Under the pieces are notes generated by a model. The model searched no databases. It was given only the letters and a program-made list of their open reading frames with translations, and was not told the DNA's origin. The position numbers and the translations under genes were made by a program. A DNA stretch of 63,978 bases, counting the filler, from Octopus bimaculoides (Eukaryota), in NCBI RefSeq assembly GCF_001194135.2. It is 6 parts of 6 records of this genome, joined end to end, with 100 filler letters (N's around TTAATTAATTAA, not from the genome) between each part and the next. Parts side by side here need not be neighbours in the genome. Positions count along the whole stretch, not along the records: positions 1 to 19,067 come from NC_068988.1; 5 more parts are not named here. One strand, written 5' to 3'. Shown piece after piece: positions 1 to 19,067 of this stretch (the first letter of the stretch is position 1; every line of letters starts with the position of its first letter).

Positions 1-41
1 TCTCACTCTGTCTCACACACATACACACGCACACACACACA

Positions 42-535
42 CCTTGACTCACTCATACTCTGTCTCTTACAAACACACACATACATAAATGTATACAAAC
101 ATATTTACAAAGACACACGTGTGTATGCGCGCGCGTGCGTGTTTGTAAGAGACAGAGAGTGAGTGAGTCAAGGGCTGTGTTGTCATATGCATACATCCAA
201 AGATGTATGTATATTTATGCATGTACGTATACATGACAACAAACCTTTCTCTCTCACTCACACTCTGTCCCTTACAAACACACACATACAGAAATGTATA
301 CAAACATATTCACAAAGACACATGTGTGTATGCGCGCGCGTGCGTGTCTGTAAGATACATAGTGTGAGTGAGTCAAGGGCTGTGTTGTCATATGCATACA
401 TCCAAAGATGTATGTATATTTATGCATGTACGTATACATGACAACAAACCTCTCTCTCTCACTCACACTCTGTCTCTTACAAACACACACATACATAAAT
501 GTATGCAAACATATTTACAAAGACACACGTGTGTA
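42..535. repeat. About 2.5 copies of a 205-bp tandem repeat with internal inverted repeats
   Basis: Near-identical blocks are offset by 205 nt (ORFs 67-303 and 272-508 are near-duplicates). 42-74 is inverted against 141-173. Confidence 0.85.
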
Positions 536-637
536 TACTTGCGCGCGCGCACGCGCGTACGTGGTGGGCGCTCCACAACCGCCATTTATTTCAATTACTC
601 TTCTGAGGATATTCACGTATATCATTTTTTTCATTTA

Positions 638-860
638 ATCATCATCATCATCATCGTTTAACGTCCGCTTTCCATGCTAGCATGGGTTGGACGATTTGAC
701 TGAGGACTGGTGAAACCGGATGGCAACACCAGGCTCTAATCTAATTTGGCAGAGTTTCTACAGCTGGATGCCCTTCCTAACGCCAACCATTCAGAGAGTG
801 TAGTGGGTGCTTTTGCGTGTCACCCGCACGAAGGCCAGTCAGGCGGTACTGGCAACGATC
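638..860 (-). mobile_element. RTE-tail type SINE or RTE LINE 3' end with (GAT)n tail (family D)
   Basis: CATCATCGTTTAACGTCCGCTTTCCATGCTAGCATGGGTTGGACG...CTGGATGCCCTTCCTAACGCCAACCA. The same element recurs at 49534, 47397, 39275, 36410, 43905, 35150 and, in the opposite orientation, 38955-39196. Confidence 0.8.
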
Positions 861-1045
861 CCCATTTTAATTTTCGTAAAAGTTTCCAAGTACCAATGAG
901 GCTTTTTGGCACATCTTCAATTTTGCCCATTCATGAGAGGCGCCCAGCCATCATTCATCTGACAGTCCATCTACAGAATGTCCTCAAATTTCTATACAGC
1001 ATATTTTGCCATTTTTTCTTCAAGTATATAAGCAACAATTTCATT

Positions 1046-1073
1046 CCCGAGCAACGCCGGGTGCCTCTGCTAG
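1046..1073 (+). mobile_element. Helitron-type 3' terminus (GC hairpin + CTAG|T)
   Basis: CCCGAGCAACGCCGGG (CCCG/CGGG hairpin) followed by TGCCTCTG-CTAG and T, the canonical Helitron 3' end arrangement. Confidence 0.65.
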
Positions 1074-1438
1074 TATATATATATATATATATATATATAC
1101 TAGCAGAGGCACCCGGCGTTGNNNNNNNNNNNNNNNNNNNNNNNNNNNNNNNNNNNNNNNNATCATCATCATCATCATCATCATCATCAGTAAATTAGAA
1201 ATCCGAATGAGGAGCACACTTTAAGTAATAGAGCAGTTATAGAGAAAGACAGTTATGGCTGATTCATAGGGTTACCCACGGGCCGCGTCCATTAAGTTCT
1301 TAGCTTTACATACGCCTCTTCACACCCTAAAGGTCAATGTCCGATAAACTATCACTCTCCTCTTTCTCTCCTTCTCTCTCTCTGTATATATATGTGTGTG
1401 TGCGTAGTGTGTGTTTGTATGTGTGCACGTGCGTGTGT

Positions 1439-1487
<49 letters not shown>

Positions 1488-2821
1488 GTGTGTGTTTGTG
1501 TGTATTTATGTATATATTTGTATTTTCTTTTTAACTTTACACCATTTCAGCTGAGGAGTTTCATTTTAGATCGCACTCTGAGAATGTTTGGTCTCATTCC
1601 AAGACATCTAAGCAATTTGAATATGAAAATCAAAAAACAAAAACTGTTAAAATTGGTTTTCGTTTACGTTCCTCTATGCAAGTGGAGATCATCGAAATGA
1701 TATTTATGATCTAAATTCAATGATAAACAATATATATGATAACAAATGAGAACTTGATATGATTATAAATGAGATGTCAGCTATTTTTACCATTCATTCC
1801 TTTCCTACTATGAAATCTGCAGATGGCATGTGGATGATGTATAAGGAAAACTTATCTCCAGAAGATTACCCACCGAATATAGTCATAAAGATATTGATCT
1901 GAATATACCATAGTTGACGTGTGTAGTTACCTATGTACTTGCGTTCATGTCAGTGGTCGTGTGATAATGTGTTTGTTGTTGTGTGTGCACATATGAGTGT
2001 ATGTATGCGTGTGTGTGAGTGCGTGTGTGTGTTTGTGTGCGCTGAGCTTGTTGGCATTTGGTACTAGGTTGGGCAGACCTATGATCAAATATGTTCCATA
2101 TATGATTATCTCATATTTTTCCGAGTGTGGTTTATCCAAGGTGTAATTACACCAAACTATCTAGCGTTTCCTTAAATTTCAAGTCTTGAACGCTATGTTG
2201 AACAATTTGAGGGAGATTTGGTTGATTTATTTCTAGCCGATTGCGAGCACTCCTAGATTTTGTCGTTGGTGTTCGGGTGTATGTAAGGATGCGTGTGTGA
2301 GTGTGTCTGTTGTGTGTGTGTGTGTGTGTGTGTGTGTATCTATCTATCTATCTATCTATCTATCTNNNNNNNNNNNNNNNNNNNNNNNNNNNNNNNNNNN
2401 NNNNNNNNNNNNNNNNNNNNNNNNNNNNNNNNNNNNNNNNNNNNNNNNNNNNNNNNNNNNNNNNNNNNNNNNNNNNNNNNNNNNNNNNNNNNNNNNNNNN
2501 NNNNNNNNNNNNNNNNNNNNNNNNNNNNNNNNNNNNNNNNNNNNNNNNNNNNNNNNNNNNNNNNNNNNNNNNNNNNNNNNNNNNNNNNNNNNNNNNNNNN
2601 NNNNNNNNNNNNNNNNNNNNNNNNNNNNNNNNNNNNNNNNNNNNNNNNNNNNNNNNNNNNNNNNNNNNNNNNNNNNNNNNNNNNNNNNNNNNNNNNNNNN
2701 NNNNNNNNNNNNNNNNNNNNNNNNNNNNNNNNNNNNNNNNNNNNNNNNNNNNNNNNNNNNNNNNNNNNNNNNNNNNNNNNNNNNNNNNNNNNNNNNNNNN
2801 NNNNNNNNNNNNNNNNNNNNN

Positions 2822-2852
<31 letters not shown>

Positions 2853-3176
2853 ATAAATTATATTAAAGTGTATCTGAAAGATACCATCATTCTAGATATA
2901 GCAGTGAAAACTTGACTCTAAAACCACATCAAGTATTCATACAGCACCTGGAGAGAAGACAAAGTGACAAAATAAACTAGCCTCATCATTGGAATATACA
3001 CAAAATGGTATTATATATACCATGCGAATACTTACATATACGCACGTATACACACATATGTATGTATGCACACGACCATCTTAAAATTGCCTGTCTAAAC
3101 TCCATGTGCTATATAGCCAAAATACCACCGCAGTGAATATAATGACGAAATAAATATATAAATTTATATAAATATA

Positions 3177-3510
3177 GATAAGATTGTTATTTAAAATACT
3201 GATCATAATAAGTGGCTTGCATGGAAATAAAAACCTTATAAGTAATAATTATTATTAAAATTATAATGAATGGTATCTAAAAGTTACCATCATGCTAGAT
3301 ATAGCAGTCAAAACTTGACTATAAAAACCACATCAAGTATTCATTCAGCACCAGGAAAGAAGACAAAGAGGAAAAATAAACTAGCAAAAAAAAAAAAAAA
3401 AAAATATTGGTATTTTGACCGTGGAGTTTAGACGAGCAATTTTAAACTGGTCTTGTGCATATGTGCATACATATGTGTATATACGTGCCTATATGTAAGT
3501 ATTCGTATGT

Positions 3511-3550
<40 letters not shown>

Positions 3551-3876
3551 NNNNNNNNNNNNNNNNNNNNNNNNNNNNNNNNNNNNNNNNNNNNNNNNNN
3601 NNNNNATATTCCACTGATGAGGCAAAGCATTTCTAATGCAAAGCCAGAAATCCGGGATCTAGAATTTTGCTAGTTTATTTTGTCTCTTTGTCTTCTCTCC
3701 TGGTGCTGTATGAATACTTGATGTGGTTTTAGAGTCAAGTTTTGACTACTATATCTAGCATGATGGTATCTTTTAGATACCCTTCATTATAATTTTAGTA
3801 ATAATTATTACCTATGAGGATTTTATTCTCATGCTAGCCACTTGATATGATCGGTATTTTAAATAACAATCTTATC
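3177..3876. mobile_element. Foldback/MITE-like element with ~210-bp inverted arms
   Basis: 3177-3389 is the reverse complement of 3665-3876 (about 85-90% identical by eye). A third partial direct copy lies at ~2858-2981. Confidence 0.75.
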
Positions 3877-6668
3877 CTTATGTGAGCAGAGAAACACACA
3901 CACACTTCAATTCGCACAACGAAACAGAGTAACACACACGCATACATGCAAACACACACACAGGCATAAAAGCACAAGCACGAAGACAAAAACATCCAAA
4001 CACATGAATATGCAAAATACATACATAAAGACGTATGCACATACATATATACATACGCACACATGCATACATCCATACATACATGCATGCATGGATACAT
4101 ACATGCATGAATACATACATGCATACATACATGTGTATGTGCACACACACACTGCCCCACACACACATGCGCACAGACAAAGAAAAAGAACGCAGCTCGA
4201 ATATCGGACAGAGTCAAGGACTATTGAAGAGGCTGGAAGTNNNNNNNNNNNNNNNNNNNNNNNNNNNNNNNNNNNNNNNNNNNNNNNNNNNNNNNNNNNN
4301 NNNNNNNNNNNNNNNNNNNNNNNNNNNNNNNNNNNNNNNNNNNNNNNNNNNNNNNNNNNNNNNNNNNNNNNNNNNNNNNNNNNNNNNNNNNNNNNNNNNN
4401 NNNNNNNNNNNNNNNNNNNNNNNNNNNNNNNNNNNNNNNNNNNNNNNNNNNNNNNNNNNNNNNNNNNNNNNNNNNNNNNNNNNNNNNNNNNNNNNNNNNN
4501 NNNNNNNNNNNNNNNNNNNNNNNNNNNNNNNNNNNNNNNNNNNNNNNNNNNNNNNNNNNNNNNNNNNNNNNNNNNNNNNNNNNNNNNNNNNNNNNNNNNN
4601 NNNNNNNNNNNNNNNNNNNNNNNNNNNNNNNNNNNNNNNNNNNNNNNNNNNNNNNNNNNNNNNNNNNNNNNNNNNNNNNNNNNNNNNNNNNNNNNNNNNN
4701 NNNNNNNNNNNNNNNNNNNNNNNNNNNNNNNNNNNNNNNNNNNNNNNNNNNNNNNNNNNNNNNNNNNNNNNNNNNNNNNNNNNNNNNNNNNNNNNNNNNN
4801 NNNNNNNNNNNNNNNNNNNNNNNNNNNNNNNNNNNNNNNNNNNNNNNNNNNNNNNNNNNNNNNNNNNNNNNNNNNNNNNNNNNNNNNNNNNNNNNNNNNN
4901 NNNNNNNNNNNNNNNNNNNNNNNNNNATATATATAAGCATATACATATATATATGCATATGTATATATATATGTATATGTATATATATATATACATATAT
5001 ATATGTATATATGTATATGCATATGTATATATATACATATATATACATGTATGAATATGCATATATATACATATGCATATACATGTGTTTATGTATATAT
5101 TAACATGTTTACGCACACATATTTACAGAGGGAGAAAGAGAGAAAGGGTGACGGACAGACACATACATACATACATATATATACATACATACATACATAT
5201 ATATACATACATACATACATACACACATAAATACATACTTGCATACATACATATGTATATTGGAAGAGAAGAATTAATAATAATTTGTTTGTTGCCAAGC
5301 ATTTTTCCATCTCATATAAACAGGGATGTTGCATGTAAAGATGAAAAGTTAAGTAGATATTCTATGAAAGACAAACATTATACGAATATTAATAAATACG
5401 AAGATTAGATTCGAGAAAATGCTTCTTAATCCACTACTCTCGTAAATGTTTTCCAAAGGATCTCCCTACTATAACACTGGAGATCGAAAAACTAGTAAAT
5501 ATCCGACCGATGCCAGATATTAATTTGGATCCGATAGAAAATTTGTCAAATGTCTCTAATTCTACTTAGAACGTGTGTCAATGCTTTTACTAACATCGAT
5601 TTGGATTTAGTCAAACCAAGAGAGCATCAAAATGAAGTGGGAAAATAATGTAAAGTGTACTAATTTGACTGTGCACTTTTTCAAGCCAATAATTATTTGT
5701 TAGATTGGCCTTTAATACATTCCTTTTATTGTTTTGATGATTTTAGAATTGTCACTCAAATGCACAATATTGCACAAAAATGTGGAAACATTTTTAATAT
5801 ACAAGAAATGACTGCAATTTTCTGTTGGAGTTTGTATTCATTGTTCATTGTTCACGAATTTTAAGACATTTCCTGTACATTTTTTTGTCACATGTGACTT
5901 ATGCATCTGCCCTACACATTCTTGAGACATTGCTTTATAAAATCACCTGAATCGAATGAAAGTTGATTAATATGTACGTTGCAATCTTGTTACTTTTTGT
6001 CTGCGAGAAGGGTGTAGATTTCGAAGCAAAATTATTGAATTGTAAGGGATATAGAAATTTCAAACCAACAAAAGAAGCAAAGCCTTACTGTAAGTAAGTG
6101 ATACTTAAAAAATTCTAATTTTATTTGAGGTTACAATGTAATCGTTACGTTTATGTTCGCTACGGTAACAACGGAGGACGGGATATAACAAAGAAAAATT
6201 AAAAAAAAACTGACTTCTTGGATAGAGTACAGTAAAGAGCAGGAAAACAAATCGAAAACGAACAGGAAAACAAATCGAAGAGGAAAAGTACCAAGCGTCC
6301 AAGTTGGATGGGCGCCCACCTCTAGGGCGACTCACCGTTAGGAATCTTTTTTCATGTCATAAATGTATTTACAGTTAAAAAGTCAAATGGATCACGGATT
6401 ACTCGTAATAGAACTGTTTCACAACCTATTCGCCAGCACATTCTCAATCACTCCCACGCATCTTCTAGTAAATTGACTGGAGCGCTGAAACTTCGACTTG
6501 CTCCCACCTTCCTAAAATTGATGAACTTGATGAGACTTTATTAAGCGGTGAGAGTCTATGTATTCAGTCCTTTAGAATTTTTCTACTGTGCAACCGATTT
6601 CACCAAAACACCAAGTTGAGTTGGTTGTGGTGGTGTGTTGGCGGTTGTTAATTGTTTGAATTCTCAGC

Positions 6669-6881
6669 CCAGGATCTTCCAGATGTATATTACTGCATAC
6701 ATCTCCCGCATTTGCTCCAGGGAGTAGAGTCTTAGCTATTTCAGTATTTCCCAGTAGCTGAGCTGTTGTAATGAGACGATGTTCTTTGTGAAGCTTTGCT
6801 GGATTGCTTCAAGATCCACTGTTAATATTACAATGTTGCGTAGCCATAGCTAGGAGCAGTAATCCAGGCGGCTGAGGACCA
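6669..6881 (-). repeat. 213-bp inverted duplicate of the CR1 segment 7588-7800
   Basis: Base-by-base reading shows an exact reverse complement of 7588-7800. Confidence 0.92.
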
Positions 6882-7229
6882 GTAGTTGTGATTTCAACGA
6901 CATGTGTAAAGTATTTCTAGCAGATCAATCTACTGTAATGAGGCTATGTCAGTGGCTCCAATAATGTAGTTAGGCAAACACCAAATATTCCACGATCCTT
7001 ATGATAAAGTTAGCTGATGGTTGAATTCTGTCTACTCATGGCAACAATTATCTGACGTCAATACACAAACCAGCAATGCATAAAAATTGAATGAGCATGC
7101 ATAGAACTGTTTCGTTACTCGGTGCATCTCACAGAAGTCTACAGATAGCTGCATTTCTACAGACTTATGAGAACCGCCAGTAAACAACATTCACAGTTTC
7201 TATGCAAACCAGGTATCACTACTGACCTC

Positions 7230-8170
7230 CGTCTGAAAGTCATCCAGAAAACATCTCGCAGAAAATACAGAACCCCAGTGATGCTACACATCTGCAGCAG
7301 GAGTTACACTCAATTTACAGATGGGCTGAGGATAATAATATGCAGTTTAATGCTGAAAAATTCGAAGCCTTGGGCTACCAGCATCCAAAACTGAATATGA
7401 AACTTACAGGGTACACTGCTCCACTGGGGAATTACAATACCAGAGCCTAAATCAGTGAGGGACCTGGGTGTCGACATGAGTGATGATACCTCTTTCCAAG
7501 TGCACATTACCAGGATGGCAACAGAGTGCAGACGACTGGCTGGCTGGATCCTGAGAACGTTCAGAACCAGAGAAAATGAAAGCGTGATGGTCCTCAGCCG
7601 CCTGGATTACTGCTCCTAGCTATGGCTACGCAACATTGTAATATTAACAGTGGATCTTGAAGCAATCCAGCAAAGCTTCACAAAGAACATCGTCTCATTA
7701 CAACAGCTCAGCTACTGGGAAATACTGAAATAGCTAAGACTCTACTCCCTGGAGCAAATGCGGGAGATGTATGCAGTAATATACATCTGGAAGATCCTGG
7801 AAGGAATTGTGCAAAGTTTTGGAACTGAAAGCTACACGAATATCAGAACGAGTCGACACTGCACAGTGCCAAAGATCCCAGCAATGCCATTGCACTTCAG
7901 GACCAGTTACTGCAACAGCCATGGTTTCAGGGGCCCACAGCTTTTTAATATTCTTTCAGAGAGCCTGAGGAACCTACACAAAGTGGATGTAAGTGTTTTA
8001 AAATCAAAGCTGAACCTCTTACTGTCAAGAGTCCCAGATAAACCTACCTCACATCAAGAGGTGCAAATGAGGGTAGCGATATCAAACTCTGTTCTTCACC
8101 AAGTGGCACATATTAGAGGAGGCGCTCACTAATCACAAAACGGTGGTGCCCTTCCATGGCCACAGCTCTG
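7230..8170 (+). mobile_element. Decayed CR1-type LINE, RT C-terminal region and 3' end
   Basis: Translates with stops and frameshifts to ...LQQELHSIYRWAEDNNMQFNAEKFEAL...VRDLGVDMSDDTSFQVHI...GWILRTFRTRE...LSRLDYCS*LW...LRLYSLEQMREMYAVIYIWKILEGIV...GPQLFNILSESLRN, typical of CR1/L2-group ORF2. Confidence 0.9.
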
Positions 8171-8603
8171 AGCTGAAACTACGAATATATATATATATAT
8201 ATATATATTTACATATATATATGTATGTCTATGTATGTGTATGTGTGTACTTCATAGCTTGGTGCCTACCAAGAGTCACTGTGCCTTTCATTCTTCCGAT
8301 TCTGATAAAAGAAATACTAGTTGATGAAAAAAAATCATGCTCTCTTCGATATAGTAGATTGTACCCAAGAAATCACTGACCCAGCTTGGCGATATTCCAT
8401 TGACAAATATAAGTACATCGCACACACACAAACAAACACGCACACACACACATACACATACACACACTCACACACATACACACACATGCATATCTCATAT
8501 CTGAGTATGTATATGTATTTTTACTTAAATAAGTGCTTATATATATACATACATACATACATACATACATACGTACATACATACATACATACATACAAAC
8601 ATA

Positions 8604-8914
8604 CGTGCATGGCTCAGTGGTTAGAACATCGGGTTCACAATTATGCGGTAGTGAGTCTGATTCCTGAACTGGGCTGCGTGTTGTGTCTTTGTGCAGGCAC
8701 TTTATTTCACATTGCTCCACTTCACTCAGCTGTAGAAATGAGTTGCAACATCACTAGTACCAAGCTGTGTCGGTTTTTTCCTTTCCCTTGGATAAAATCT
8801 GTGGCGTGGAGAGGGCAGGTTGGCATGCATGGGTGGCTACTTGACTTCCATAGACAACATTGTCCCGACTTGTGCCTCTGAGAACTTTTTAAGTGCCATC
8901 CCGAGGTCATTCAT
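8604..8914 (+). mobile_element. tRNA-derived SINE (family C)
   Basis: GCATGGCTCAGTGGTTAGAAC (A box)...ACTTTATTTCACATTGCTCCACTTCACTCAGCTGTAGAAATGAGTTGC; homologous to 53818-54118. Confidence 0.8.
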
Positions 8915-8935
8915 NNNNNNNNNNCTTTATATATA

Positions 8936-8991
<56 letters not shown>

Positions 8992-9622
8992 GTGCTGTAA
9001 ACATTCTCCACCGCACATATTCAATGTATGTGTTTTGTTTGTTCTGGGGTGAGTCGTCTCGCCTGTATATAAGATTCAGATGTTTTAACACTCAGTTCAA
9101 TGAATGAGTTGTCCTTAAGGCTCTTCTCGGGCGAACCCGAGGAACAAACAAAACACATTCGTTGAGTATGTATGGCCGATAATACATATATACACACAGG
9201 TATATTAATGCAAGCAAGGAAAATAGAACTCAAAACATGAGTACCAACGAGAGAAAAAATGGAAAACAGGACAAGTAACATAAAGTACAACCCTCCATCA
9301 GTTGTCGGATGCCTATGTACTCCTCATTTCGAGCATTTAACGAGAATATGAGTCTTCGAAGACAGTTGCTCCCATAAATCCCAAGATAAAATTGGGAACA
9401 AAAACAGGACAGTGGAGACATCAAGAAAACCGAATGAAAACAAACATGGAGGGTCGTTAGACCAGAACGAGGGGAAAATGGTGAACGCTGGGTGAAATAT
9501 TTTCTTTGAAAAGAGAAAAGATAGAAGAGAGAGAGATAGAAGACGTCCAGTCCTTATAATGTCGTGCAAGAAAAGAAAGATGGTCACGTGAGGAAAAGAA
9601 AGATGGACGATGNNNNNNNNNN

Positions 9623-9653
<31 letters not shown>

Positions 9654-11706
9654 CATATATGCATATACATATTCATTTATCTTTATTTATATGTATAGGT
9701 AGGTGATGTGTGTACGAGTGCCTATGTGTATATATTTATCTATATGTGTGTTTATGATTATGCTTACGTTTACTGGTTTGAAAACTGTTGTAACAAAGCA
9801 TAGCGTAGCGCATCTATAAAATATTGATCAATATAGCAGACAACTATATGACAAGAGGGGATCGACTATATAAGTATGTGTGTGTGTGTGTGTGTGTATG
9901 TATGTGTGCGTGTGTGTGTGTGTGTGTGTGCTGTGTATGTCTGTTTGTGTGTTTATATAGTGCCATTTGTTTAAAGTATATTTTCAAACATTTGCACCCA
10001 TATCTCGAAATGCTAAAAAAACTCACCATCACTTCAAACCTCAGTTAAATAAATATCTTTATGTTCAGTAACAATATCACCCATTCGATTCTTCCCATCT
10101 CGTAACCCGCTCCACATCGGTGACTTTCCAAGCTTTCATTTGGTTTAAACTCCATATGAATGCAAGGAAAAATTCTACGCTAGCCACTCTGAAAGATAAA
10201 AAAGGATTCTGTTTTGGTTGTAATAAAGTATTGATGGCTTTTGTGTTATTCTTTAACCATCAGACACCAAGATTCGTTTTATTTTTTCTTTATGAAAGCG
10301 AAATCATAGAAACGGTAAGCAATTGAAAGTGTTTGGTCATTCGAGCTGAAGTAACTTACTGTAAAAAGAATTGATAAAATATTCATTTATAAAGCAGAAG
10401 ATTTTTAAGTTTGGCAACCATTTTCAACACAGCGTTTCGTCAAGCAAGAAGGTCTTCATGAAATATTTGTATAAAAGCTTCCTAAAGCAAAACTATTTAT
10501 CCACTTGATTTAAATAAAAGAATTGAATATAAGTAACTCAAAAATAAAACGAAAATAAGGAAAAAGAAATTATAGAGTAAGGAAATAATACAATACCAGT
10601 GAGAAGCTATACAAATGTTAAAGATTTGGCCTTCAGCAAAACAAATCACAGAGAACATTTTGAGTTGATTACAAGATTATATTTGAAACTGTTAAAACGA
10701 ACAGTTTATCATTTTGAATAGCTATGAAACAATTGATAGAAATAAAATTGGTTGTGAATTCTCATCACAAAATATAACGAGTGGGTTGCGCTCGAACAGA
10801 AATAAGCCACCATATATAGAATAGAAATTGTCAGTTATCTAGAAATATCAATCTTCAGAAAATATTACCAATAATTTACAACAAATTTTAGGTCGAAAAC
10901 AACGGTAACTTATCCTCAGTTGATAATTTTGTGACCAGGTTTCAATTCATGACGGAAGTTTCGCGGCCCATTCACAGAGACGTTACATCTTGGTCTACGT
11001 CCTAAAATTAGTCTATCTAAAAAGCTAAGGAAGAATTAGCTGCTATTTCTTTCAAATTGTGTGACAGAAGTGACTCCGTCGTTCCCTATTAATTGAAGAA
11101 AGTAATTTTCAAATGCTTAACTACCGTACTTCTAAATGGCAAAGACCTCTCATTATTCGTGCGTTCAATTGGAAATCTTTCAATCTCTTTATGAAAATAA
11201 TCATTGTTTTGGAAGCACACCACTCAATAACCTATAAGCAATGAGCAAAACAGCTTGTTGTTCAAAACAGAGGAAACCAATTCATGTGAGCATGGCGTTG
11301 GTGCTAGCTAGATATAACATACAAATACATTATAATGTACTGAATAATATAGTTGTCATTTTCTAGCTGAACAAACAATCAGTCTGATATTTACGAGTGA
11401 TTAGAGATGTTTTTCACTGTAGTAGTAAACCCATGTCAATCTAATGTATGATCAGGTTTCGAATCCACTAATGTTCATGTATGTCAATGTTTCTTTGTTA
11501 CCATGTACCTTGTCATATATATAAGCCCACACTTAATTGCGAGATATATACAAATTCATACACTTCTACATGACACATACACTTTTGTATGTAAACTTTT
11601 ATACTTGTACAATATAAACTCAAGCATATTTAGAAGATATACAAATGGCAAATACACTTATATACAATTATACAACTATGTACCACAAATACACTTACAC
11701 ACTACA

Positions 11707-12005
11707 TACGAATTGCAGTCCTGAAGTTTTGATACTTTTTCAGGAGAGGAATTTAGTAATTTCAAAGAAGTACAAATCTCTAATCTCCTTCAAAGTAAAA
11801 TCCTCTGACATGAATGCATTTGTAGCGCTCCAGTCATTTCTTGAAGGTTTCCATGAGATCCTCTAAAATGAAGGTTCCAGGACCCTTGTCACAGCCTCCA
11901 TATTTTCAATGCCTTCAAAACGATTGCCCCTAAGAATCTCCTTCAGTTTGTTGTATAACCAATTGTTACTAGGAGCAAGGCCTGTACTGTTGTCCATTTC
12001 TGTCA
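11707..12005 (-). mobile_element. Mariner transposon 3' relic (transposase C-terminus + TIR + TA)
   Basis: Minus strand reads GLAPSNNWLYNKLKEILRGNRFEGIE...ETFKK*LERYKCIHVRGFYFEGD*, compare mariner SPDLAPSDF.LF..LK..L.G.RF...W.KCI...G.YFE. It ends in ...GACTGCAATTCG|TA. Confidence 0.8.
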
Positions 12006-12868
12006 AGTAGTATGTTACTAGGATGGAATTATAATAAAGCGTCTTTAGTAGGGTGTGTCCAAAGTGTTGTCACAGGCGCTTCCGTCTATCTTCAATAAAA
12101 AGTTAGCAGGTTATTAGATGTATAATACTGATATACTAAAATTGCAATAATTTAGAATAGTTACTATTGCCTCTCTTTCAAAACGTCTCTTACATTTACA
12201 CAAACACATGACTTATACAAACATACAAAAGGGTGTGTTTAGGTACAGGTAAACGACAAATTAATATTTAGAAAAATAGTGCTTTCCCTAATGAAGCAAA
12301 TCTCTGACAAAATGTGTTTGCAGACAGTAATGACCTTCCCGTTTTTCCGGATATCGTGGAATAAATACATCGACCGATATATCATATCTGTCCTTATTTT
12401 TAAGACAATAATATGTTATTTCAAGGATATTTGGATGATATATCTAGCAGATCAGTCTACTGCTAGAGACAACGCCATTGGCTCCTAAAATGTAGTTAAG
12501 CAAATACCAAATATTCCAATGAATCTCATCAACGAATTTATATCCCTTAAGAACACCTCAATAATTAAATATTTCGAATAAGATCAGCTAAAAAAGAAAC
12601 AAAATCACACAATGAAATATTAGAAATATTAAGAATAATACTGGTTAAAGATAAATTATATCTAACACTTAATGTCGCAAAAATCCTATATCCAGGTATA
12701 ACACTGATTGATGACCCCTCCCACATAATAACAATAAAGCTTTGAATATATCACGAAGAGTATTGTAGGTTTGCTCGGAGTATTGCGGTACAGAAGTAAA
12801 ATAAGGAATTTTTACAATCATAGGTTGAGATTTGTTCTCAAAGTGTTTACATTTCTTGCATCTTTCAG

Positions 12869-13006
12869 GTCATCTATGGGAATCCTGTTGCTCCCGTTGA
12901 TCAAGAAGAAACCACAGATGATGATAGTTTTCCATTAGATAATGAAGAGGAATGCCAGCCAAAAAATGTAACGTCATGTCCTCCAGACCATTGCTGTGTC
13001 ACAGAG
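12869..13006 (+). CDS. Internal coding exon (phase 0/0) of a prokineticin/astakine-like cysteine-rich secreted peptide
   Basis: Acceptor TTTCTTGCATCTTTCAG|GTC and donor GAG|GTGAGT. The 138 nt (46 codons) read VIYGNPVAPVDQEETTDDDSFPLDNEEECQPKNVTSCPPDHCCVTE. The other two frames contain stops. Confidence 0.88.
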
Positions 13007-14137
13007 GTGAGTTGTTTGTAGTGTCTATAATTTAATATCATAAACTGAATTTTATAAAAGAACTTAGTTCAAGTAAACTGAATCTATACACCGGAAACAG
13101 TTATTATATGTAGAATTGGCAACGAGCTGGCAAAATCGTTACTGCGCTGAACAAAATGGCTAGAGGATTTCATCTGCCTTTAAGCTCCCAGTACAAATAT
13201 CATTGTATTCGACTTTGCCTTTCATACTTTGGTAATCGATAAAATGAATACTATCTGAGTACAGGGGTCGATGACATCGATTTATTCCCTCCCCTGAAAT
13301 TACTAGCCTTGTGATAACATCTGAATCCTTTATTATTGGTAGAATCTTTAGAGCGTTGGAGAATTTCATTCAGGTGTTACTTCTGGCTGTTTACATTCAA
13401 AGTTAGAATCCCACTGAGGTGAAATTTGCCTTTCACCTCTCCGGTGATCGCTCAAATATATAGGTTTCAAGATGTCGATGATTTTTCATGAAATTAAATA
13501 TGAGAATCAGTTGAGCGATCGCGTTAACGCTAGTGTTGTAATAATATCAGATTTCAGTGGTAGAATTCCTAGAAAACAAGGTATTAATTCAAGGTGCAGT
13601 ACTTTTTGAATTCAAATTCCATCTTTTATCCTTCCGGGTTCAATAAGATAAAATACCAGTGAATTACTGGAGTTGTTGATATAGACTAATCTCCTTGTAT
13701 TTCTATCAGAAGCATTATCTTCAACTGTAAAACGCAAACAAACAAAAAAAAAAAAACTTAGACGAAGAAACGAATGAGGATCTCCGTCGGCGAAAATATA
13801 CAGTAATGTTTGTAAATGTAATTTCATGTGCTGTAGGGGTGAAGATAAATCTAATGCTTGATGATTATTTCTTTTGTGTGTGAGAGAAAGACGGAAAGAG
13901 AGTGAAAGGGAGGGGGAGAGAGAGAGAGAAGGAGGAAAAAGTCGTTATATTTTGCACTGTTTTACCTGTCAAATGAAAAATGTTTTCATCTTATCTTTCT
14001 GACGATAGCGCAGTCCTGAAGCCACAGTTTCCATTTCTCTTCTCTGCATACGAACATAACGACATACATCAACATCATCCGTTCTATATTACTAATATTG
14101 ACAAACTATGTATTGAATTATATCTTTCTCTTCCTAG

Positions 14138-14320
14138 ATTCTTGCGTACCAGCCAAGTTTCAAGGGCCAGAGAGCAGCCGGCCATTTGGTATGTCGACGC
14201 ATGCGCGACGAGGGAGAACTGTGTATTTTGAAGGACGCCTTACACATTTGTCCATGTAGAGAAGGTCTCGACTGTGTGGAAATGGACGATTCGGATTATG
14301 GACACTGTTCGCGAATATAG
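14138..14320 (+). CDS. Terminal coding exon of the prokineticin/astakine-like peptide
   Basis: Acceptor TATCTTTCTCTTCCTAG|ATT, phase 0, reads ILAYQPSFKGQRAAGHLVCRRMRDEGELCILKDALHICPCREGLDCVEMDDSDYGHCSRI*. Joined to the previous exon it gives C-x7-C-x4-CC-x21-C-x9-C-x8-CPC-x5-C-x10-C, the 10-Cys prokineticin/colipase-fold pattern. Confidence 0.88.
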   Translation: MLAYQPSFKGQRAAGHLVCRRMRDEGELCILKDALHICPCREGLDCVEMDDSDYGHCSRI

Positions 14321-14469
14321 GCCGAATATAATTCAAAGTCAGAATCAGTAGCAGCGGTTACAATAACAGCAATAGCAACAACTGCATCCATGACAGAGCG
14401 GCAATAATAATAACATCAGCAACAACAATCGACACATAAAAATTCTCTATCTGGTACTACAACCACATC

Positions 14470-14506
14470 AACCTCCTCTTCCTGCTGCTGTTGCTACTAC
14501 TATAGT

Positions 14507-14590
<84 letters not shown>

Positions 14591-14690
14591 ATCACCAACT
14601 CACCACCACCACCACCACCACCATCACCACCACTACTACTAATAATAATGATTATAACAATACCAATTACAACTAAAACAAATACAACAA
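14470..14690. repeat. Compound (CTA)n/(CAC)n/(AAC)n microsatellite in the presumed 3'UTR of the prokineticin-like gene
   Basis: Visible directly in the sequence. Confidence 0.9.
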
Positions 14691-14697
14691 CAACATC

Positions 14698-14703
14698 AAT
14701 AAA
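14698..14703 (+). terminator. Candidate polyadenylation signal (AATAAA) of the prokineticin-like gene
   Basis: First AATAAA I found after the stop codon and the (CTA)n/(CAC)n tract. Further AATAAA hexamers occur near 14847 and 15124. Confidence 0.3.
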
Positions 14704-17059
14704 TGCACGCAGTTCACCATGTACGCATTTCTAACACATCATATCACATCCCACACAGCACATTTTCTGCCCAATCACCGTCCCAGCACTCTAACATATA
14801 ATTCTAATCATACAGAGCACACGAAACATAGTCACTGCCCCATGAAATAAACATACCTCACATTACTCATAAACTACACAACTTACAAAATAACCCCAAG
14901 TAAATTCCAACCAACAAAACCAAGATCCACCTGTACTAAACCATGTCAAACTGATCTCAAAAAAAGACAATGCTTAATATCCGTCTGGTTAACGGACGTG
15001 CATTTAATGCATGTGCAATTAAACTTGCATGAAAATTTTGATAATAATGTTTCGTTGATTAGTATATTGTGTTTCCAATAACAGTAGAATTCAGTATCTT
15101 GTTCAGCCACTGTGGGTAACCGTAATAAAAAGAATAGAAAAGAAGCTTTGTAATGATAACGTATAAGCAAGTGGATGATGAGACTTTCAACGCTTTCTCA
15201 AATGGCAATAAAGTCAATAAGAAGGATACTTACACACACACACACACACATACACACACACACACACACGCACACACATGCACGCACGCACACATACAAA
15301 CACACACACACACACACACACGCACACATGCACACACAGTATACACTATATTTAGTATCAATGCTACTATTGGTTTCATGCGTAAATAGTCGAAATTTTC
15401 AAGCGTTCCTCTTAATTCGTTTCAATGTTATATAAGGCTACTTTGTTCAGCTTGGAAACGGATACCAATGCTTCTAAGTGAAATACTTGAGTAATGTATT
15501 CATATGATTTTCAATATTGTGAAATCGAAATCAGGGAACAAATTGTAGCATTGTTAACACGTAAATACANNNNNNNNNNNNNNNNNNNNNNNNNNNNNNN
15601 NNNNNNNNNNNNNNNNNNNNNNNNNNNNNNNNNNNNNNNNNNNNNNNNNNNNNNNNNNNNNNNNNNNNNNNNNNNNNNNNNNNNNNNNNNNNNNNNNNNN
15701 NNNNNNNNNNNNNNNNNNNNNNNNNNNNNNNNNNNNNNNNNNNNNNNNNNNNNNNNNNNNNNNNNNNNNNNNNNNNNNNNNNNNNNNNNNNNNNNNNNNN
15801 NNNNNNNNNNNNNNNNNNNNNNNNNNNNNNNNNNNNNNNNNNNNNNNNNNNNNNNNNNNNNNNNNNNNNNNNNNNNNNNNNNNNNNNNNNNNNNNNNNNN
15901 NNNNNNNNNNNNNNNNNNNNNNNNNNNNNNNNNNNNNNNNNNNNNNNNNNNNNNNNNNNNNNNNNNNNNNNNNNNNNNNNNNNNNNNNNNNNNNNNNNNN
16001 NNNNNNNNNNNNNNNNNNNNNNNNNNNNNNNNNNNNNNNNNNNNNNNNNNNNNNNNNNNNNNNNNNNNNNNNNNNNNNNNNNNNNNNNNNNNNNNNNNNN
16101 NNNNNNNNNNNNNNNNNNNNNNNNNNNNNNNNNNNNNNNNNNNNNNNNNNNNNNNNNNNNNNNNNNNNNNNNNNNNNNNNNNNNNNNNNNNNNNNNNNNN
16201 NNNNNNNNNNNNNNNNNNNNNNNNNNNNNNNNNNNNNNNNNNNNNNNNNNNNNNNNNNNNNNNNNNNNNNNNNNNNNNNNNNNNNNNNNNNNNNNNNNNN
16301 NNNNNNNNNNNNNNNNNNNNNNNNNNNNNNNNNNNNNNNNNNNNNNNNNNNNNNNNNNNNNNNNNNNNNNNNNNNNNNNNNNNNNNNNNNNNNNNNNNNN
16401 NNNNNNNNNNNNNNNNNNNNNNNNNNNNNNNNNNNNNNNNNNNNNNNNNNNNNNNNNNNNNNNNTATATATATACACATACACATATATATATATATATA
16501 TATACACACCTCAAAATTTTAAGCAAGAACACAAACACACTAGAAATATGTAAAATCTTATATTTTTGAAGTTTAAATAACAATATGGTGTGATTTGAAG
16601 GAGATTTTGCTTCAATTTTAAGCAGGCGAGAAGCAACGTAGATGCTTTCTCACTGTTTCAAGTGTATTGCATGTAGGACGCAGAGGTGAAGAATTTTTTA
16701 CGTAATATTTTTTCTTTTATTATGTTTGTTTCTAAATAAAACCTAGAAGAAAAACAAACTGCTTTCTTGTGATTAATTTCTTTTTGTTCTCCGGAAGTTG
16801 TTGGATAGCAAAACCGGTAAAGAGCCATATAAACATTGACTAGCAGATTTAAATTTTGTCCAATGATGTCTTGATTTCAAATACTACACGGATTAATTTG
16901 CCTTTCAGAATTAATAAGTCGGCGATTTGGCAGAAACGTTAGCACAACGGGCGAAATGCTAAGCGTTAGAGAGAGTAGAGATTGAGTTTTTTTAGTCGAC
17001 CCTAATAGTCAATGCCTTTCATGCCGTCTATCTATTTTATTATTCACCTCTGGAGTGCT

Positions 17060-17210
17060 TCTACTTTCATAATGAGTTGCTTCGTATGGGGAGACTACAG
17101 TGGGCAACAGTATTCAAGGTGGGGTCAGGCAAAAGTAGAGTAGAGAAAGATGATGGTGTGAGCATCTCTAGACCGGAAAGTTCTCAGAATCTAGGAGGAC
17201 ATCCTGCGAG
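17060..17210 (-). mobile_element. Decayed CR1 LINE RT fragment
   Basis: Minus strand reads S*ILRTFRSRDAHTIIFLYSTFA*PHLEYCCPL*SPH, compare CR1 WILRTF.SR....L.LY...VRPHLEYC..VWSP. Confidence 0.75.
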
Positions 17211-19067
17211 CCAAATAAACCTTGCTGTTTACGTGGGAACACCAGTTTAGATTGTTATCAACAATTACTTCAAGGCCTTTGGTGTTCTTGGATGACACTA
17301 AGGTAATTTCAAAGTTTCCTTTTTCCCATGCATGTATGCATATATATATGTATATGTCTATGTATAATAAAAATAAAAATAAAAAAAAATAAAAAAAATA
17401 AAAACAATTTTTAGAATTTTAACCGTTGTCTGCCAAAACAGTGACATATATATGTGTAGATGGATCAGCGTATATATGTGTATACTTTAAGATTATACGT
17501 ATATATGTGAGTGGGTATATGTGTTTATATGATTGTGTGTGCTTGTACATATGTATAGGTAGGTTTATATTTGCATGTATGCATGTAATACATTGTATCC
17601 ATTCAGTGTTACACGGTGGTGAGAGGAGCACATGCACACACAACCATATGTATATATNNNNNNNNNNNNNNNNNNNNNNNNNNNNNNNNNNNNNNNNNNN
17701 NNNNNNNNNNNNNNNNNNNNNNNNNNNNNNNNNNNNNNNNNNNNNNNNNNNNNNNNNNNNNNNNNNNNNNNNNNNNNNNNNNNNNNNNNNNNNNNNNNNN
17801 NNNNNNNNNNNNNNNNNNNNNNNNNNNNNNNNNNNNNNNNNNNNNNNNNNNNNNNNNNNNNNNNNNNNNNNNNNNNNNNNNNNNNNNNNNNNNNNNNNNN
17901 NNNNNNNNNNNNNNNNNNNNNNNNNNNNNNNNNNNNNNNNNNNNNNNNNNNNNNNNNNNNNNNNNNNNNNNNNNNNNNNNNNNNNNNNNNNNNNNNNNNN
18001 NNNNNNNNNNNNNNNNNNNNNNNNNNNNNNNNNNNNNNNNNNNNNNNNNNNNNNNNNNNNNNNNNNNNNNNNNNNNNNNNNNNNNNNNNNNNNNNNNNNN
18101 NNNNNNNNNNNNNNNNNNNNNNNNNNNNNNNNNNNNNNNNNNNNNNNNNNNNNNNNNNNNNNNNNNNNNNNNNNNNNNNNNNNNNNNNNNNNNNNNNNNN
18201 NNNNNNNNNNNNNNNNNNNNNNNNNNNNNNNNNNNNNNNNNNNNNNNNNNNNNNNNNNNNNNNNNNNNNNNNNNNNNNNNNNNNNNNNNNNNNNNNNNNN
18301 NNNNNNNNNNNNNNNNNNNNNNNNNNNNNTATATATATATATATATATATATTGTGTGTGTGCGCGTGTGTTTATATACAACCTTCGACATAGTAACAGT
18401 CATATATACAGCTTGAACAGACACTCATATAAGTACGTAAGCATACGTTCACATGTATGTACACATATACACGCACACAGACACGTCTACACACTTACAT
18501 ACCTAAATATTCACAAACATACATAAGTACATACGTGCATATATACATATATACATACATACATTCTTATAGGCATGCATGCATGCATACGCATGTACAC
18601 ATATGCACACGCACATTCTTACATGCACATTACATACATACATACATACATACACACATACATACATACATATCAAGAACTAACTGTTACTTTCTCAGAT
18701 GCAGCACGGAATTTTATCAGTGAAAAGGTCGCGGTCTCAAAGCGACAGAAATATTTTGACAAATTAAATTTAAATTTTGAAGTGAATCTAATGGTTTTTG
18801 TGTGTTTTTAAATGGCTTATAAACACCTTCCACGCTGCATTATAAAATAACATAGCTTTAAAACTTCCTAATGACTTCAATATCATTATCATTATTACTC
18901 TTTTCCTGTAATAAAATTATTTTATTAGAGGAATATAGTATATGGTAATACTTATAATGTACACACTAGTATATATATATAATAACTATAGACACACACA
19001 TACATGCATACACAAATACATATACACATATATAGACACATATACATACACATAGATATCATATATA

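Follow-up and report, generated by a model that had tools for sequence, protein, structure and literature searches.

Does a pair of short exons in the genome of Octopus bimaculoides encode an overlooked secreted peptide, and if so, to which of the cysteine-rich ligand, toxin or digestive families should it be assigned? The question arises at positions 12869–14320 of a window of 63,978 nucleotides (nt), the whole stretch of DNA analysed here, which joins six parts of six records of assembly GCF_001194135.2 with 100 filler letters between each part and the next (positions 1–19,067 derive from NC_068988.1). The exons belong to a gene that is already annotated, LOC106870902. The gene is real, conserved and annotated; as the best overall explanation, we think it rather probable that it encodes a secreted colipase-fold protein, perhaps a ligand.

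The locus carries the last two coding exons of LOC106870902

Two exons are read on the + strand, 12869–13006 (exon A) and 14138–14320 (exon B), both with canonical AG/GT splice sites. Exon A (text GTCATCTATGGG...TGTGTCACAGAG) is flanked by ...tttcttgcatctttcag before and gtgagt after, and encodes VIYG, which ends the signal peptide, then an acidic linker, and Cys1–Cys4 (C-x7-C-x4-CC) with an NVT sequon. Exon B, preceded by ...atatctttctcttcctag, reads ATTCTTGCG...CGAATATAG. Because the length of exon A is a multiple of three, the two join in phase 0, and the spliced product is a 106-residue peptide with ten cysteines (VIYGNPVAPVDQEETTDDDSFPLDNEEECQPKNVTSCPPDHCCVTEILAYQPSFKGQRAAGHLVCRRMRDEGELCILKDALHICPCREGLDCVEMDDSDYGHCSRI, then stop; cysteine spacing 7, 4, 0, 21, 9, 8, 1, 5, 10). 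Exon pair, join and cysteine pattern thus read exactly as the first-pass annotation of this DNA had given them.

Over its full length, the peptide shows 100% identity to residues 22–127 of RefSeq XP_052826107.1 (LOC106870902, an uncharacterized protein of 127 residues, P0001), whose residues change from ...GIFFH to VIYGNP at the acceptor 12849–12868. Searched with tblastn, exon A is 100% identical to this protein throughout, as is exon B (E 2e-40); exon B also aligns by blastn with an orthologue mRNA (75% over 161 nt). The two exons are, far beyond chance, the last two coding exons of LOC106870902.

The same annotation had taken the gene for one that was missed and possibly unannotated, which does not hold. 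Three public gene models in succession contain the exon pair: UniProt A0A0L8IEB8 (the original genome-project model of 112 residues, named 'Prokineticin domain-containing protein'), the older RefSeq XP_014772624.1 (129 residues) and the current XP_052826107.1, all of which agree on both exons and the junction and differ only upstream. A0A0L8IEB8 and XP_014772624.1 fall in the same 90% cluster as XP_052826107.1, which also includes the orthologues XP_029639647.1 (O. sinensis) and CAI9726469.1 (O. vulgaris). The gene is indeed absent from the mechanical list of open reading frames (ORFs), as had been remarked, but only since its coding sequence is divided over short eukaryotic exons. This makes it an ordinary gene: uncharacterised, annotated, and already bearing the label prokineticin domain-containing.

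Upstream, the N terminus of XP_052826107.1 (MALSNFVQLTWTCLAVGIFFH) comes from an exon outside the window; neither exact six-frame matching nor permissive tblastn found a signal-peptide exon within it. The gene ranges over ~109 kilobases (kb) in O. bimaculoides and ~114 kb in its O. sinensis orthologue. Orthologues have an N terminus of the MALSNFVQLTWTCLA type, and those of Argonauta hians (P0002) and a cuttlefish (P0003/P0035) have a hydrophobic N terminus followed by GNPV; this shared arrangement supports the current RefSeq model with its far-upstream exon. The early annotation behind XP_014772624.1 missed this short first exon ~100 kb away, and the mini-exon with which that model begins (Table 1) is probably not a real start. 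A match to LGIFFHVI at 6338–6361 (E 0.68) was considered as the signal-peptide exon and dismissed as chance; it spans the exon junction of the protein and has no continuing match around it.

Splicing is documented in an orthologue. Logan contig L001 (1196 nt, run ERR12374249) encodes a 130-residue orthologue in one uninterrupted frame and crosses both junction positions (...TWTQ/VTHGNP... and ...CCVKE/ILIYQP...), and being contiguous over both, it represents spliced mRNA. Variants of its protein occur in >80 further contig sets.

Models and profiles point to a colipase fold

The peptide has the cysteine order of the colipase fold, C..C..CC..C..C..CxC..C..C, within ~75–80 residues. AlphaFold2, run with 4 and with 19 aligned sequences, returned all-β models with predicted local distance difference test (pLDDT) values of 70.4 and 76.4. 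For both models, the top Foldseek matches in the PDB were MIT1 (1imt), Dkk1 (3s2k_C and 3s8v_X), Dkk2 (2jtk) and colipase (1lpb_A), the second search adding U33-theraphotoxin (2n8k). These matches have probabilities of 0.96–1.00 and template-modelling (TM) scores of 0.5–0.65, with E-values of only 2e-3 to 1e-1.

Profile comparisons lead to the same group of proteins. A profile of the family described below, searched against PDB sequences, retrieved the Dkk2 Cys-2 domain (E 0.004) and then Dkk1, Bv8, MIT1 and a MIT-like theraphotoxin (E 0.5–3); phmmer of the peptide alone against PDB sequences gave no match. With hhalign, the family profile aligned to the human hormones PROK1/PROK2 (a profile of two sequences) at 79.6% probability (E 1.5e-5, 52 columns), placing Cys2–Cys9 in register at the cost of two compensating indels, the family loop being 10 residues longer after CC and 9 shorter before CPC. 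A motif, C.P(L/M)...G(E/D).C, is common to the family and PROK1/2, and the octopus protein has diverged there (CRRMRDEGELC).

In Pfam, relatives of the octopus protein match seven families below threshold, of which four are colipase-fold: Colipase_C (E 0.015), Prokineticin (E 0.069), Dkk C-subdomain 2 (E 0.15) and MIT_LIKE_ACTX (E 0.22). The other three are DUF2043 (three members), Lustrin_cystein and FXa_inhibition (one member each). The family consensus matches Colipase_C (E 0.02) and, weakly, MIT_LIKE_ACTX (E 1.2), both still sub-threshold, and the Colipase_C matches span only 13–17 residues around CPC. A colipase fold is well supported by the predicted models together with the profile–profile alignment and these sub-threshold Pfam and PDB matches. 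The first-pass placement of the peptide in the superfamily of prokineticins, Dkk Cys-2 domains, colipase and MIT-like toxins is therefore borne out by structure prediction and alignment; its more specific expectation of a Prokineticin (PF06607) profile match failed, as set out below.

A compact family, its named members molluscs, with two cephalopod paralogues

An exhaustive HMMER profile search (1.84 billion representatives, E ≤ 1e-3) found 19 proteins, one of which (P0017) is a repeat artefact. Apart from two longer, mis-modelled proteins, the others have 94–145 residues, begin with a signal peptide and share the ten cysteines. The ten cysteines are invariant across 19 aligned family members, whose consensus is C-x7-C-x4-CCVKE...Y.PE..G......C.PLR..GE.C........CPC..GL.C........GHC. 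All members with a source name are molluscs: cephalopods, bivalves (Mizuhopecten, Dreissena, Ruditapes, Solemya and Mya) and gastropods (Patella, Haliotis, Gigantopelta, Bradybaena, Physella, Nucella, Littorina, Babylonia and Elysia). The remaining matches are unnamed environmental proteins, and no Crassostrea representative was among the profile matches. Most members are labelled 'uncharacterized', with one scallop protein called 'Prokineticin domain-containing protein' and two bivalve ones 'venom protein 164-like'.

Among the environmental matches, P0018 (ENA contig, 191 residues) has CCVKEV, then unrelated sequence, then GIAYIPEATGPKP, and appears to be a mis-prediction in which an intron was retained. 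Its position would match that of the octopus intron after CCVKE, a hint that the family conserves it.

O. bimaculoides has one paralogue, LOC106876164 (P0004, 41% identity). The cephalopod proteins form two orthogroups with 72% and 76% identity within and ~50–55% between them; each holds an Octopus and a cuttlefish member, so the duplication predates the octopod/decapodiform split. The orthologue group of the window gene covers at least five cephalopod species and includes proteins of O. sinensis, O. vulgaris, Argonauta hians and a cuttlefish. Between Cys1 and Cys2 the orthologues conserve an N-glycosylation sequon (window 12965–12973, Asn54): the window gene has NVT, both O. sinensis and Argonauta have NLT, and the cuttlefish has NAS. 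The paralogue LOC106876164 lacks it (NKD).

Sequencing runs place both orthogroups in transcript data. P0034, the orthologue of the window gene, occurs in SRR25158131 and SRR25158145; P0005, the orthologue of the paralogue, occurs in SRR25114243, SRR19578104, SRR25158145 and sister runs. SRR25114243 is listed as Sepia esculenta larvae (PMC10442824), and SRR19578104 is named in several S. esculenta transcriptome papers. From run co-occurrence with P0005 we infer a cuttlefish origin for P0003/P0034; both orthogroups would then be expressed in S. esculenta larval RNA-seq, with the window-gene member assigned by that same co-occurrence.

Selection was estimated by the Nei–Gojobori method on a single pair, the window coding sequence and L001, the orthologue attributed to a cuttlefish. 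In the Cys domain the proportions of non-synonymous (pN) and synonymous (pS) differences are 0.14 and 0.75 (the latter saturated), giving pN/pS ~0.19; in the acidic linker they are 0.38 and 0.67 (pN/pS 0.56). Non-synonymous change in the Cys domain is ~5x rarer than synonymous change, and the domain is under strong purifying selection.

A putative endogenous ligand

The 127-residue precursor has a hydrophobic N terminus (core residues 9–20) and one ten-Cys domain. The signal peptide, contributed by the exon ~100 kb upstream, would be cleaved after VIYG (small residues at −1 and −3), and an acidic mature protein of ~102 residues would be secreted. Its predicted N terminus (NPVAPVDQEETTDDD...) lies ~24 residues ahead of Cys1, and it contains 22 D/E against 9 K/R. 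Asn54, in the conserved sequon, may be N-glycosylated. Five disulfides are predicted in the pattern of MIT1 and the prokineticins, which is C1–C4, C2–C5, C3–C7, C6–C9 and C8–C10.

The protein would most likely act as an endogenous ligand in the extracellular space, akin to the prokineticin-domain/astakine proteins of invertebrates, through a receptor other than the vertebrate prokineticin G-protein-coupled receptors; we regard this as about evenly balanced. Before Cys1, none of the aligned family members, the octopus protein included, shows an AVIT motif. AVITGA is needed for prokineticin receptor activation (PMC8398477, citing Bullock 2004). Invertebrate prokineticin forms lack AVITGA and protostomes lack receptors of the prokineticin receptor (PKR) type (PMC8398477, PMC8557429). 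With the motif absent and such receptors reported lost in protostomes, any signalling would therefore pass through another receptor.

Several observations weigh against a prokineticin-type ligand and belong beside this proposal. A Pfam scan of the spliced peptide gave no PF06607 match at E ≤ 10, and no relative reaches the gathering threshold of 21.6 bits, the best (P0009) scoring 13.9 bits (E 0.069). Membership of Prokineticin in the Pfam sense does not hold, although the fold does. The AlphaFold models are of moderate confidence only, and the five disulfides are predicted. At E ≤ 1e-3 the HMMER profile search returned neither astakines of arthropods nor prokineticins of vertebrates; the astakine link is therefore drawn from fold and architecture and not from orthology. 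In its mature form the octopus protein is acidic, unlike the basic-rich PROK1/2 (judged by reading the sequences, not computed). The exact 127-residue protein was seen in genome annotations only, not in transcript assemblies.

A broader proposal is possible but doubtful: the proteins with the CCVKE...FGHC signature may be a separate and so far undescribed group of colipase-fold ligands (named members all molluscs), with two paralogues fixed before the octopod/decapodiform split. The window gene would then play the part of astakine in cephalopods, as a cytokine of haematopoietic or neuro-endocrine function with a non-PKR receptor.

Alternative explanations

The protein could instead be a colipase-like digestive cofactor or some other non-signalling secreted product, antimicrobial or structural in the matrix. 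Colipase belongs to the top structural matches, some relatives have Colipase_C as their best Pfam match below threshold, and oyster prokineticin-like transcripts are reported mainly from the digestive gland (PMC8398477). We consider this unlikely, given that the Colipase_C similarity is limited to the short segment round CPC and that an acidic protein would be unusual among cationic antimicrobial peptides.

A salivary-gland venom peptide of the MIT-like or 'venom protein 164' type, injected into prey, had been raised as an option in the first-pass annotation. In its favour, the fold search places a snake-venom protein first and a spider MIT-like toxin third, and two bivalve relatives carry the NCBI name 'venom protein 164-like'. 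These 'venom protein' names are, however, labels derived from similarity. The Cys domain is under the strong purifying selection described above (pN/pS ~0.19), whereas recruitment to venom would be expected to show as accelerated or positive selection, multiplication within a lineage and venom-gland expression; orthologues are 1:1 across octopods and a cuttlefish, and only two ancient paralogues were found in cephalopods, with no lineage-specific expansion. Relatives also occur in non-venomous bivalves and grazing gastropods (Patella, Haliotis), and the putative cuttlefish orthologue is seen in many whole-larva RNA-seq assemblies. Selection, coleoid orthology and paralogue number together disfavour a venom role, which we judge quite improbable.

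Of equally low probability is a single-domain Wnt modulator that binds LRP5/6-type receptors in the manner of the Dickkopf Cys-2 domain. It draws on the best PDB profile match, Dkk2 Cys-2 (E 0.004), which has the motif CKP(L/V)..xGExC...C.C.kGL.C in common with the family, and on the presence of the Dkk1 and Dkk2 C-terminal domains among the top structural matches. Against it, the 127-residue precursor has a single Cys-rich domain and no Dkk N-terminal domain, the octopus protein departs from the motif at CRRMRDEGELC, and two-domain dkk orthologues are described separately in lophotrochozoans (PMC6425005).

That the exons are chance open segments or a pseudogene is effectively refuted: the confinement of the exact protein to genome annotations would fit, but the frame is intact, the splice sites are canonical, orthologues exist in at least five cephalopod species, one is transcribed, and pN lies far below pS.

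Features of the locus and its surroundings

The coordinates of the gene parts, of two features found only in the superseded model and of the assembly gaps are collected in Table 1.

Table 1. Features of the LOC106870902 locus and of the surrounding window.
Feature	Position	Strand	Evidence or remark
ATG mini-exon (MSQKSYIQ, then gt)	12672–12695	+	Only in superseded XP_014772624.1; without the conserved signal peptide
Upstream exon extension, 45 nt	12824–12868	+	Alternative acceptor catag, then GTTGAG; only in superseded XP_014772624.1
Polypyrimidine tract and AG acceptor	12849–12868	+	tttcttgcatctttcag; ends the intron after the far-upstream signal-peptide exon
Internal coding exon A, 138 nt, 46 codons	12869–13006	+	Residues 22–67 of XP_052826107.1
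Intron, 1131 nt, phase 0, GTGAGT...TAG	13007–14137	+	Sequence; orthologue mRNA contig L001 contiguous at the equivalent position
Last coding exon B, 183 nt including TAG, 60 codons	14138–14320	+	Residues 68–127; Cys5–Cys10 including CPC
Presumed 3' untranslated region	14321–14851	+	Extent inferred only, from sequence and TRF
Eight assembly gaps (N runs, ~2.8 kb total)	1122–1161, 2366–2821, 3551–3605, 4241–4926, 8915–8924, 9613–9622, 15570–16464, 17658–18329		Mostly flanked by TA/CA microsatellites

Just 3' of the stop codon, presumably within the 3' untranslated region, (TAC)n of ~32 copies followed by (CAC)n occupies 14494–14640 and could be length-polymorphic. AATAAA motifs lie downstream of the stop at 14698–14703 and 14846–14851. 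The intron between the two exons holds three similar short motifs recognized by eye (13214–13246, 13424–13458 and 13619–13655; ttgcctttca..c.tt.cggt.atcg.t.aaat), which suggests degenerate copies of an element resembling a short interspersed nuclear element; the repeat tool, at the settings used, did not report them.

The window has a high AT content, numerous microsatellites and nine assembly gaps. The eight gaps of Table 1 account for the very low GC content of some composition windows and for long X-filled pseudo-ORFs. Nine other ORFs in the window match no Pfam family, the window scans found no Rfam family and no transfer RNA, and tblastn found no second copy of the domain in the window. 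The remainder, in which nothing else looks coding, consists of intronic or intergenic sequence that contains microsatellites, gaps and interspersed repeats.

Repeats of several kinds lie upstream. In the large intron ahead of the exons is a perfect (100%) 213-nt inverted repeat (arms 6669–6881 and 7588–7800, 706 nt apart), which may be an element of the foldback or inverted-duplication kind, or else an artefact of the assembly. The right arm with the sequence after it (~7300–8130, +) resembles, by eye, a degenerate C-terminal part of a non-LTR (long terminal repeat) retrotransposon ORF, with no Pfam match there. An interspersed repeat is present in two direct copies, 6887–6992 and 12414–12518 (80–83% identity over ~105 nt, split into two blocks). 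The copies are separated by 5.5 kb, the second one preceding the window's first exon by ~350 nt. Further away, a CA/TG-rich tandem repeat at 48–536 (205-bp period, 2.4 copies, 94% matches) gives rise to mirror-image spurious ORFs at 67–508 on both strands.

Significance

In itself the finding matters little: gene and domain label already stand in RefSeq and UniProt, and prokineticin-like precursors have already been reported across molluscs. What is gained is backing from orthologues for the present RefSeq model, in which the signal peptide comes from a distant upstream exon; a compact and deeply conserved clade with two cephalopod paralogues, its named members all molluscs; and purifying selection that points to endogenous signalling (haematopoietic or neuroendocrine) and away from venom. 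A literature search found no study of a cephalopod prokineticin or astakine. To our knowledge cephalopod haematopoietic factors are essentially unknown, and the gene is therefore a reasonable, if unremarkable, candidate for white-body research.

Comparison with known systems

Arthropod astakines are haematopoietic cytokines of crayfish and shrimp, and oyster CgAstakine is their molluscan counterpart. They stimulate haemocyte production, bind the ATP-synthase β subunit on haematopoietic cells and are proposed to signal through a receptor other than the prokineticin receptors. Like the octopus protein, arthropod astakines are secreted and have one prokineticin-type domain, ten cysteines and no AVITGA (PMC8398477 for the astakines). 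The architecture is alike, but none of them is among the profile matches at E ≤ 1e-3, and no family member is named astakine.

PROK1 and PROK2 (AVIT family, PF06607) share with the octopus protein the ten-Cys framework with CC and CPC. The octopus protein differs in having no AVITGA, in the acidic linker of ~24 residues ahead of Cys1, in the two compensating indels and in lying below the Pfam gathering score.

The Dkk C-terminal (Cys-2) domain and colipase have the same fold by Foldseek. Dkk1/2/4 carry an extra N-terminal Cys-rich domain, whereas the octopus region before Cys1 consists of a signal peptide and a Cys-free acidic linker. Colipase has an N-terminal activation peptide; the octopus protein has nothing resembling it, and the likeness to colipase is limited to the CPC region.

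Closest in overall description are the prokineticin-like peptide precursors that are widespread in molluscs (De Oliveira et al. 2019, PMC6425005), among them the oyster Cragi-prokineticins 1–5 (PMC8398477). Likened by description only, these molluscan and lophotrochozoan precursors and the octopus protein have in common a signal peptide, a single ten-Cys colipase-fold domain and the lack of AVITGA. Set beside them in the same way, the octopus family bears a signature of its own in CCVKE, Y.PE..G and FGHC.

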